From NCBI RefSeq assembly GCF_963853765.1, contig NC_088858.1, forward strand, positions 55,552,001 to 55,616,000: a stretch of DNA of 64,000 bases. Reading direction: 5' to 3'. Below, piece after piece: positions 47,386 through 47,991 of the stretch. Below the pieces are notes generated by a model. It was not told the origin of the DNA. It searched no databases and saw nothing but the letters and a program-made list of their open reading frames with translations. Position 1 is the stretch's first letter, and each line of letters opens with the position of its first letter. The translations under genes were made by a program, and so were the position numbers. This DNA is from Magallana gigas. Its lineage: Eukaryota.

Positions 47386-47991
47386 ATGGAGAGAACTGGG
47401 GAGTTCGGTACGGAAGATTCCTGTAAGTGGAGGGACAATTGTGATTGTCTACAGGTGGACATGGATTTAGACACGGGACTTTCCCAGGATTCCGTGGTCA
47501 GCATGTCTTCATCACAACTCTCACAAGATTCCGTGGCCTCGTCACATTCCACAGATCTCACATCGGATTTACTTACTCCAGAAGTGTCCGGAAAGAAAAA
47601 GAAAAAATCGGGAACAAAAAAAGTGAAGAAGAAAAAAGACAGAGGTGATGGGGAGACAGGGGAAAAGGTTAAAAAAAGTAAAAAGGACAAAAGTAAAAAG
47701 TCCCGGTCCTCTTCGTCCGTCCGACCGGAACCGGAAGGAGGGAATCCCGTGAACCTAGTGCCAATGGACGAATTTGACCGAGTGATCTATAACAATGACC
47801 CTTTGTTCTCAGACATCGATATCAGTGAGGAGGAGGACCAGTCCCAGAAACCGCAGCGCCCCTCCCGCGCGCCCCGCCCCGGGGGCCTGATGTTCTCGTG
47901 CCTGTCCCTGGGAATTCAGTCTAATACTATGATTAAATACGCTATTATAGGAACAGAGGTCCAGAATATTTTAAAAGTGTCTCTAAGACGG
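47386..47991 (+). CDS. TPM: Tropomyosin alternative long first exon (202 aa; Ser-rich, Lys-rich disordered region ending ...IKYAIIGTEVQNILKVSLRR)
   Basis: GC-richer 606-nt open frame from ctccATGG to a phase-0 donor cgg|gtaggc, compatible with phase-0 exon 3. The last ~20 aa are amphipathic. Splicing to exon 3 is inferred, not shown. Confidence 0.75.

Follow-up and report, generated by a model that had tools for sequence, protein, structure and literature searches.

The tropomyosin gene and its three alternative starts

The window (i.e. the whole stretch of DNA that was analysed, 64,000 nucleotides in length) carries the tropomyosin gene of the oyster Magallana gigas. This gene has three alternative starts, in the order exons 1a/2, an exon referred to here as aTm-type (after the fly isoform aTm1, or Tm1-I/C) and exon 1b, and exon 3 accepts three alternative upstream exons, as is evident from joints in RNA (Table 1). 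The aTm-type exon corresponds to an open reading frame of 202 codons in intron 2, between exon 2 and exon 3. The nearest in-frame stop codon before its ATG at 47386 is located 24 nt upstream (47362-47364), and the 3' boundary of the exon reads ...CGG/GTAGGC (the slash marks the exon boundary, here and below), with a donor in phase 0. An ATG exon of this size and phase in the second tropomyosin intron had been proposed in the original prediction, which was made from the sequence alone, and the reading frame, the exon coordinates and the RNA joint all agree with it. The translation also has all of the predicted content: LSQDSV occurs at residues 32-37 and again at 45-50, and is accompanied by a Lys-rich block, an acidic/Pro linker and, as the last residues, IKYAIIGTEVQNILKVSLRR. 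None of the Pfam domains scores above threshold in the 202 amino acids of the exon; a match to SR-25 (17 bits, compared to a cut-off of 40) was rejected as a low-complexity artefact. An open reading frame on the minus strand (47301-47690) was also rejected, being the Phe-rich complement of the Lys-rich block.

Table 1. Positions, within the window, of the aTm-type exon, its parts and the neighbouring tropomyosin exons
Feature	Position	Strand	Description	Basis
Canonical exon 2 (muscle-type isoform)	46465..46590	+	126 nt	
Alternative first exon, 5' untranslated part	46904..47385	+		RNA contigs collinear with the genome
Alternative first exon, coding part	47386..47991	+	202 codons, ATG start, GT donor; head domain and coiled-coil extension	
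Lys-rich basic block	47593..47700	+	residues 70-105	sequence; present in all mollusc orthologues
Spiralian-conserved motifs	47722..47814	+	RPEPEGG (residues 113-119) and M-DEFDRVIYNNDPLFSD (residues 127-143)	
Junction peptide	47917..47991	+	QSNTMIKYAIIGTEVQNILKVSLRR, residues 178-202	very probably homologous to fly aTm1 257-281
GT splice donor	47992..47993	+	phase 0	RNA joint with GT..AG ends; boundary conserved in other species
Exon 1b, alternative first exon of the short cytoplasmic isoform	49245..49382	+	starts MSMGGAGTLKALKDK; 5' untranslated region from ~48934	
Exon 3, shared acceptor exon	52413..52546	+	134 nt	preceding AG; Pfam PF00261 (Tropomyosin), E=1.2e-11

The RNA evidence consists of four runs (contigs of X1, X2 and X9, the last of which is declared as RNA, and raw reads of X21), which were aligned to positions 46545-52544, and exon 47386-47991 was found in 20 runs from 13 studies. 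The only joints listed across the four runs are 46590>52413, 47991>52413 and 49382>52413. The second of these, which had been predicted as the joint of the aTm-type exon, has GT..AG ends and occurs in two studies, with a contig depth of 12.3 in X9 and 8.6 in X1. Contigs that carry it are unspliced for 300-480 nt upstream of the ATG. Collinear contigs start at 46904 (X1), 47086 (X9) and 47215 (X2) and end at 47990/47992, while the depth climbs from ~3 to 8-13 across 46745-47345; the transcript start lies within ~46900-47200. A splice from exon 2 into exon 47386-47991 was seen in none of the four runs. With contigs that are unspliced upstream and no joint arriving from exon 2, the exon is a first exon with its own start, and 47386-47991 is thus the coding portion of a first exon, the third in the gene, that is transcribed independently and spliced in phase 0 to exon 3.

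This third start is a minor one, its joint reaching ~0.2-1% of the depth of the muscle joint in the three contig runs. The muscle joint (46590>52413) reaches depths of 789-7859 among the contig runs, and X21 has 144 junction reads (142 + 2) for it; that of exon 1b (49382>52413) has a depth of 532 in X1 and 83 in X2, with an exon 1b contig of depth ~600 in X9. In X2, the aTm-type exon has a depth of 13.1 and its contig halts at the donor, with weak read-through beyond it. The stranded raw reads of X21 cover the exon 4-13x and match the tropomyosin exons in orientation, and despite this coverage no 47991>52413 junction reads are listed for that run. X21 represents a divergent haplotype or strain, and also has intronic signal: same-strand coverage is 5-12x at 49745-50544 and 51745-51944, five molecules begin at 50309, and the intronic reads differ from the window at many fixed positions. 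This signal could stem from intron retention, from an exon missing in the annotation or from expression of a repeat.

The exon has already been modelled automatically, in the NCBI model tropomyosin isoform X18 [Magallana gigas] (406 aa), the residues 1-202 of which are 100% identical to it; no paper describing it was found. An older model, UniProt K1QFV5_MAGGI, instead joins exon 2 to an internal AG acceptor at ~47455 (…TASE/VDMDLDT…) and reads past the donor; the joint from exon 2 to ~47455 is absent from all four runs and this model was rejected. As for the sequence itself, position 47642 is A in all four runs and G in the window, which makes residue 86 Lys instead of Arg. Lys86 is also found in K1QFV5 and in the closest relative, and the Arg86 of the window would seem to be specific to this assembly or to a minority allele.

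The gene layout is not limited to this assembly. A contig of another animal (ENA contig L002) has an exon-2-like segment at 7296-7406, an aTm-type exon at 10001-10870 (P0022, INSNTMIKYAIIGAELQN...NLRR/V) and an exon-1b-like open reading frame at 13531-13776, i.e. the same layout, which shows that the three starts have kept their order. Four tandem versions of the exon that follows exon 3 were located by tblastn (54237-54359, 54409-54534, 54758-54895 and 55145-55273), of which isoform X18 takes the first.

Relation to the fly exon and distribution among protostomes

For the comparison with Drosophila, the fly peptide was taken from solved structures (PDB 7BJS, 7BJG and 7BJN, 'SD21996p'), with a construct numbering (252-334) that matches the residue names used by Dimitrova-Paternoga et al. 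2021. The fly junction reads ...SSDTMMKFNIIRNELHNIMNTQLKR/AESEVAAL... (PDB 7BJS chain C), with MKFNII...QLKR before the boundary. The version given in the original prediction was right in all but the first residue, which is M (MKFNII) and not I (IKFNII), and the gapless alignment of the two junction peptides that was claimed there holds against the real fly sequence, with QSNTMIKYAIIGTEVQNILKVSLRR/AEQEI in the oyster versus SSDTMMKFNIIRNELHNIMNTQLKR/AESEV in the fly.

Exon 3 alone matches the fly aTm1 chains in the PDB with 52.5 bits, like any tropomyosin. When preceded by the last 30 residues of the oyster exon, it matches 7BJS chain C with 82.7 bits (E=8e-23), a gain of ~30 bits, and with the junction peptide added this chain outranks all canonical tropomyosins. 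In register with the fly peptide, the BLOSUM62 score is 57 for the oyster (11/25 identical) and 67 for the octopus (13/25 identical), scores that none of 200,000 shuffles reached, while the peptides that close exon 2 and exon 1b, likewise coiled coil in front of exon 3 and used as negative controls from the same gene, score -17 and -41, respectively. A phmmer search of the PDB with the entire 202-aa exon gave low-complexity noise only, i.e. the fly match needs the junction peptide anchored by exon 3. The proposal that the oyster exon is the counterpart of the Tm1-I/C-specific exon is borne out by the difference between 82.7 and 52.5 bits and by the shuffle test; judging from sequence, the last 25-45 residues of the exon are very probably homologous to the Drosophila Tm1-I/C-specific exon, including the 20-residue extension that contacts kinesin heavy chain (Khc).

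In the fly, this extension corresponds to aTm1 residues 262-281, described as '20 unique residues' that extend the coiled coil, where I267, L271 and L279 form the hydrophobic core of a triple coiled coil of 2 Khc : 1 aTm1 (PMC8247599). The I267A/L271A double mutant has weaker Khc binding and disrupted oskar localisation, and the D1 and T1 mutants abolish or reduce Khc binding (PMC8247599). In the alignment, the oyster counterparts of the core residues are I188 (I267), V192 (L271), L200 (L279), I195 (I274) and Y185 (F264), and other molluscs have I, L and L at the positions of I267, L271 and L279. The oyster differs from the fly by Gly189 and Val192, in place of Arg268 and Leu271. Single L271A or L271R substitutions affect fly binding only mildly, so that the conservation of residues is a weak predictor of binding.

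In both animals, the tropomyosin exon beginning with canonical residue 81 is preceded, in phase 0, by an alternative 5' exon. The two proteins also have in common a head that is long and disordered and, shortly before the extension, a PG motif and a basic patch. The oyster head (202 aa) is shorter than that of the fly (~261 aa) and, unlike the latter, contains the spiralian-specific motifs RPEPEGG and DEFDRVIYNNDPLFSD as well as a poly-Lys block. An AlphaFold2 run on residues 105-247, with the cross-phylum alignment A3 as input alignment, predicts a helix at 170-246 that is continuous over the exon junction, with a block-mean pLDDT of at least 90 from ~185 onwards. Residues 105-169 have a block-mean pLDDT of 46-66, a short helix (129-134) being their sole regular structure, and residues 1-104, which were outside the folded fragment, have a low-complexity composition rich in Ser, Lys and Asp/Glu. 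In this model, the head is thus shown as ~170 disordered residues, with a predicted helix that begins ~30 residues before the junction and continues into the coiled coil from canonical residue 81.

The modelled oyster isoform also differs from the fly one at the other end. The rod of fly I/C comprises only residues 81-165 (of Tm1-PG) and is followed by a low-complexity tail that forms cross-beta structure (PMC8247599), whereas oyster X18 has the full rod, with 204 residues past the junction and a normal tropomyosin C-terminus. A truncated rod with a low-complexity tail of the fly type is absent from the X18 model, and no low-complexity open reading frame was found in the rest of the window (to 64000). 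The full rod is also found in most non-Drosophila forms, judging from length arithmetic, and in one transcript-derived annelid protein. Because the modelled isoform has no fly-type tail, the intermediate-filament-like behaviour linked to that tail is not predicted for the oyster, and the architecture of X18 does not support the filament role that had been suggested for it. With a full rod and no tail, the oligomeric state and the partners of the oyster isoform may differ from those of the fly.

Orthologous first exons were retrieved by word-indexed search from other oysters, Haliotis, Biomphalaria and Octopus. Their features follow a fixed order in molluscs, i.e. LSQ[DE]S repeats, the Lys block, SSSRRPEPEGGN, DE[YF]DRVIYxNDPLFSD, a basic RxRR patch and then GGIxFPC..LGINSNTMIK[FY]AIIGTELQN..SL[KR]R. 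In genomic open reading frames elsewhere, the codon after ...L[KR]R is nearly always Val (GTx), and therefore the donor is placed identically in other species.

A profile (A2) built from four mollusc and two further sequences, none of them from an arthropod, was used in an exhaustive search of 1.84 billion representatives and gave 836 matches at E<=1e-3. Among the matches listed, more than 100 cluster representatives carry the module. The taxa named by cluster look-up belong to Mollusca (Mytilus, Patella, Aplysia), Annelida (Paralvinella, Dimorphilus), Nemertea (Lineus), Platyhelminthes (Schistosoma, Trichobilharzia) and Arthropoda (Artemia, Folsomia, Hetaerina, Aphidius, Phyllotreta, Danaus, Contarinia, Anopheles, Sergentomyia and Drosophila innubila). 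The arthropod-free profile recovered the 85-aa fly PDB construct at E=1.4e-24, and matched dozens of arthropod isoforms at E ~1e-24 in alignments that begin at least 50 positions upstream of the junction. A large group (group C, …DIFSAAQMVNTNTMLKFAIIG…) has rods that are 77% identical to Dimorphilus and is probably annelid; word-indexed searches with annelid-type exons returned metagenome or transcriptome open reading frames only, and the look-alikes in the ESM Atlas are tropomyosin clusters only. Named deuterostome or cnidarian matches were not found among the best 150 of the 836.

The conservation of the junction peptide had been expected in other bivalves, and it extends well beyond them. 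Within the molluscs the peptide is kept by bivalves, gastropods and cephalopods, and outside these it occurs in annelids, a nemertean, flatworms and arthropods, where the annelid and nemertean forms (TMMKFAII, GYPG) are intermediate between the mollusc and insect versions. The core of alignment A3 consists of a basic patch, [GY]PG and S[SN][DN]TM[MI]K[FY].II..EL.N.....L[KR]R/AE.E. Beyond the basic/YPG region and the helix, insect and spiralian heads have little in common. R113, P114, P116, E117 and G118 are invariant in 10 sequences, and motifs of the RPEPEGG and DEFDRVIYNNDPLFSD type occur in molluscs, annelids, one nemertean and one flatworm and are absent in insects. RPEPEGG and DPLFSD can thus be called spiralian (Artemia keeps RPDPVG), while KLRCxSE and RCxDYPGLAFG are arthropod motifs that are absent from spiralians. 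At the level of sequence, the module is shown to be the same alternative exon in Mollusca, Annelida, Nemertea, Platyhelminthes and Arthropoda. With the module in five protostome phyla, an origin of the exon before the split between ecdysozoans and lophotrochozoans, as had been proposed from the oyster alone, is well supported by the sequence comparison.

A possible role in kinesin-1 binding and the alternatives

The best explanation overall, which seems probable although far from assured, is that the oyster possesses an aTm1-type first exon giving a kinesin-1-binding tropomyosin isoform. In the proposed mechanism, the extended helix of the oyster isoform would, like its fly counterpart, insert into kinesin-1 heavy chain at the alternative cargo-binding coiled coil, which is conserved, while the basic disordered head would contact RNA and/or the kinesin tail, and the isoform would act as a non-actin adaptor or regulator of kinesin-1. 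By analogy with the fly, this mechanism can be placed just on the favourable side of an even chance for the oyster. The kinesin/RNA reading is put forward because a fly Tm1 fragment consisting of the head and the minimal coiled coil but not the tail (1-335) suffices for oskar localisation and Khc inhibition, because the fly head (aa 1-247) binds RNA, in this case poly(U), and because evolutionary conservation of the Khc site, from fungi to animals, is reported (PMC8247599). The low-complexity tail, for its part, is dispensable for kinesin function in the fly. On the oyster side, the kinesin-contact core residues appear to be kept (I188, V192, L200), the poly-Lys block would be compatible with RNA binding by the head, and the Lys-rich block (residues 70-105) is a candidate RNA- or microtubule-binding segment.

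A more far-reaching version of this reading, which is tentative and falls a little short of an even chance, is that a tropomyosin-kinesin-1 adaptor isoform (basic disordered head plus extended coil) was already present in the last common ancestor of protostomes and would still operate in molluscs, annelids, nemerteans and flatworms, e.g. in mRNA/RNP transport in oocytes, embryos and neurons. The oskar machinery would in that case be one local application of this module, and RPEPEGG and DE[YF]DRVIYxxDPLFSD would be undescribed partner-binding motifs lost by insects.

The main alternative is that the exon is indeed homologous, but that its ancestral or molluscan role is not in kinesin binding or RNA transport. 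In that case the head would replace the N-terminal overlap region of tropomyosin and lead to an actin-associated or self-assembling (e.g. antiparallel) coiled-coil protein with another partner, and kinesin binding would have been added to an older scaffold in arthropods or dipterans. This alternative draws on the heads, as those of spiralians strongly conserve RPEPEGG and DE[YF]DRVIYxxDPLFSD, which insects miss, just as the insect motifs are missing in spiralians, and on the rods, as the oyster and most non-Drosophila forms keep a rod of 204 residues with most of the actin-binding periods. Nevertheless, the best-conserved stretch over the five phyla is precisely the Khc-contact extension of 20-25 residues, with its a/d core kept, and the partner surface on Khc is itself reported to be conserved from fungi to animals (PMC8247599). 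It is therefore regarded as rather unlikely, although it is the alternative to be taken most seriously.

A second possibility is that the likeness to the fly is due to chance or convergence, arising from the heptad constraints on any peptide that precedes exon 3. Just 11 of the 25 residues are identical and the similarity is a short one in a heptad-patterned helix, but the two other coiled-coil peptides in front of exon 3, from exons 2 and 1b, have negative scores, and the shuffles never matched the observed score. In addition, the profile without arthropods retrieves the fly construct together with dozens of arthropod isoforms, the annelid and nemertean sequences provide intermediates, and the phase-0 boundary before residue 81 is identical. 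This reading is close to refuted and is considered very improbable. Less probable still, to the point of being negligible, is that the exon is transcriptional or annotation noise (i.e. an intronic open reading frame without a functional protein), which could appeal to its low depth relative to the other isoforms, to the lack of listed junction reads in X21 and to the contig run with read-through at the donor, but which is contradicted by the exact GT..AG joint in two studies and the recurrence of the exon across 13 studies, by dN/dS values of 0.16, 0.10 and 0.14 against three oyster relatives (with 95%, 74% and 67% protein identity, respectively) that stay at or below 0.32 in the low-complexity half of the exon, and by the conservation of reading frame, motifs and donor position for more than 500 million years.

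Related isoforms and significance

The short cytoplasmic isoforms that begin with exon 1b offer the closest comparison within the gene, as they likewise use an internal promoter in the same intron, splice to exon 3 and skip exons 1a and 2. Exon 1b encodes ~46 coiled-coil residues that form the head-to-tail overlap for actin binding, whereas the aTm-type exon encodes 202 residues that are mostly disordered according to the prediction. The aTm-type exon does not resemble exon 1b in sequence, and its expression in the examined runs is 7-60 times below that of the latter. A different comparison is that with cytoplasmic intermediate-filament proteins, to which fly Tm1-I/C has been likened (head-rod-tail). 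Like these, the oyster isoform has a long coiled-coil rod behind a low-complexity head, but it differs from them in that the oyster model has no low-complexity tail and no sequence relation to their rods.

In the literature, aTm1 has been described as 'present in Drosophilidae' with '20 unique residues' (PMC8247599), and further fly papers call it a unique isoform. A published account of the conservation of the aTm1 exon was not found in the search, the scope of which did not include Cho et al. 2016 and Veeranan-Karmegam et al. 2016. In the comparisons above, the '20 unique residues' are the best-conserved stretch of an alternative exon that tropomyosin genes carry in at least five protostome phyla, and isoforms of the aTm1 kind are far older and more widespread than described, i.e. 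not limited to fruit flies.

If the kinesin interaction is conserved as well, the light-chain-independent loading of cargo or RNA onto kinesin-1 via tropomyosin would be an ancient mechanism, which would be open to study in spiralian eggs and neurons. The cross-phylum alignment would in that case mark the key residues of the head (the basic patch, the [GY]PG motif and the TM[MI]KF start of the helix), and the ancestral module of head and extended coil would be set apart from the fly-specific low-complexity tail. For the oyster, a gene known mainly as that of a muscle protein and allergen gains a non-muscle, probably non-actin tropomyosin product.

The arthropod isoforms with an aTm-type head carry misleading automatic names in NCBI (among P0056, P0059 and P0051), namely 'myosin-10', 'nucleoporin GLE1', 'E3 ubiquitin-protein ligase BRE1A' and 'mediator subunit 1', and these names may have hidden the family from keyword searches.
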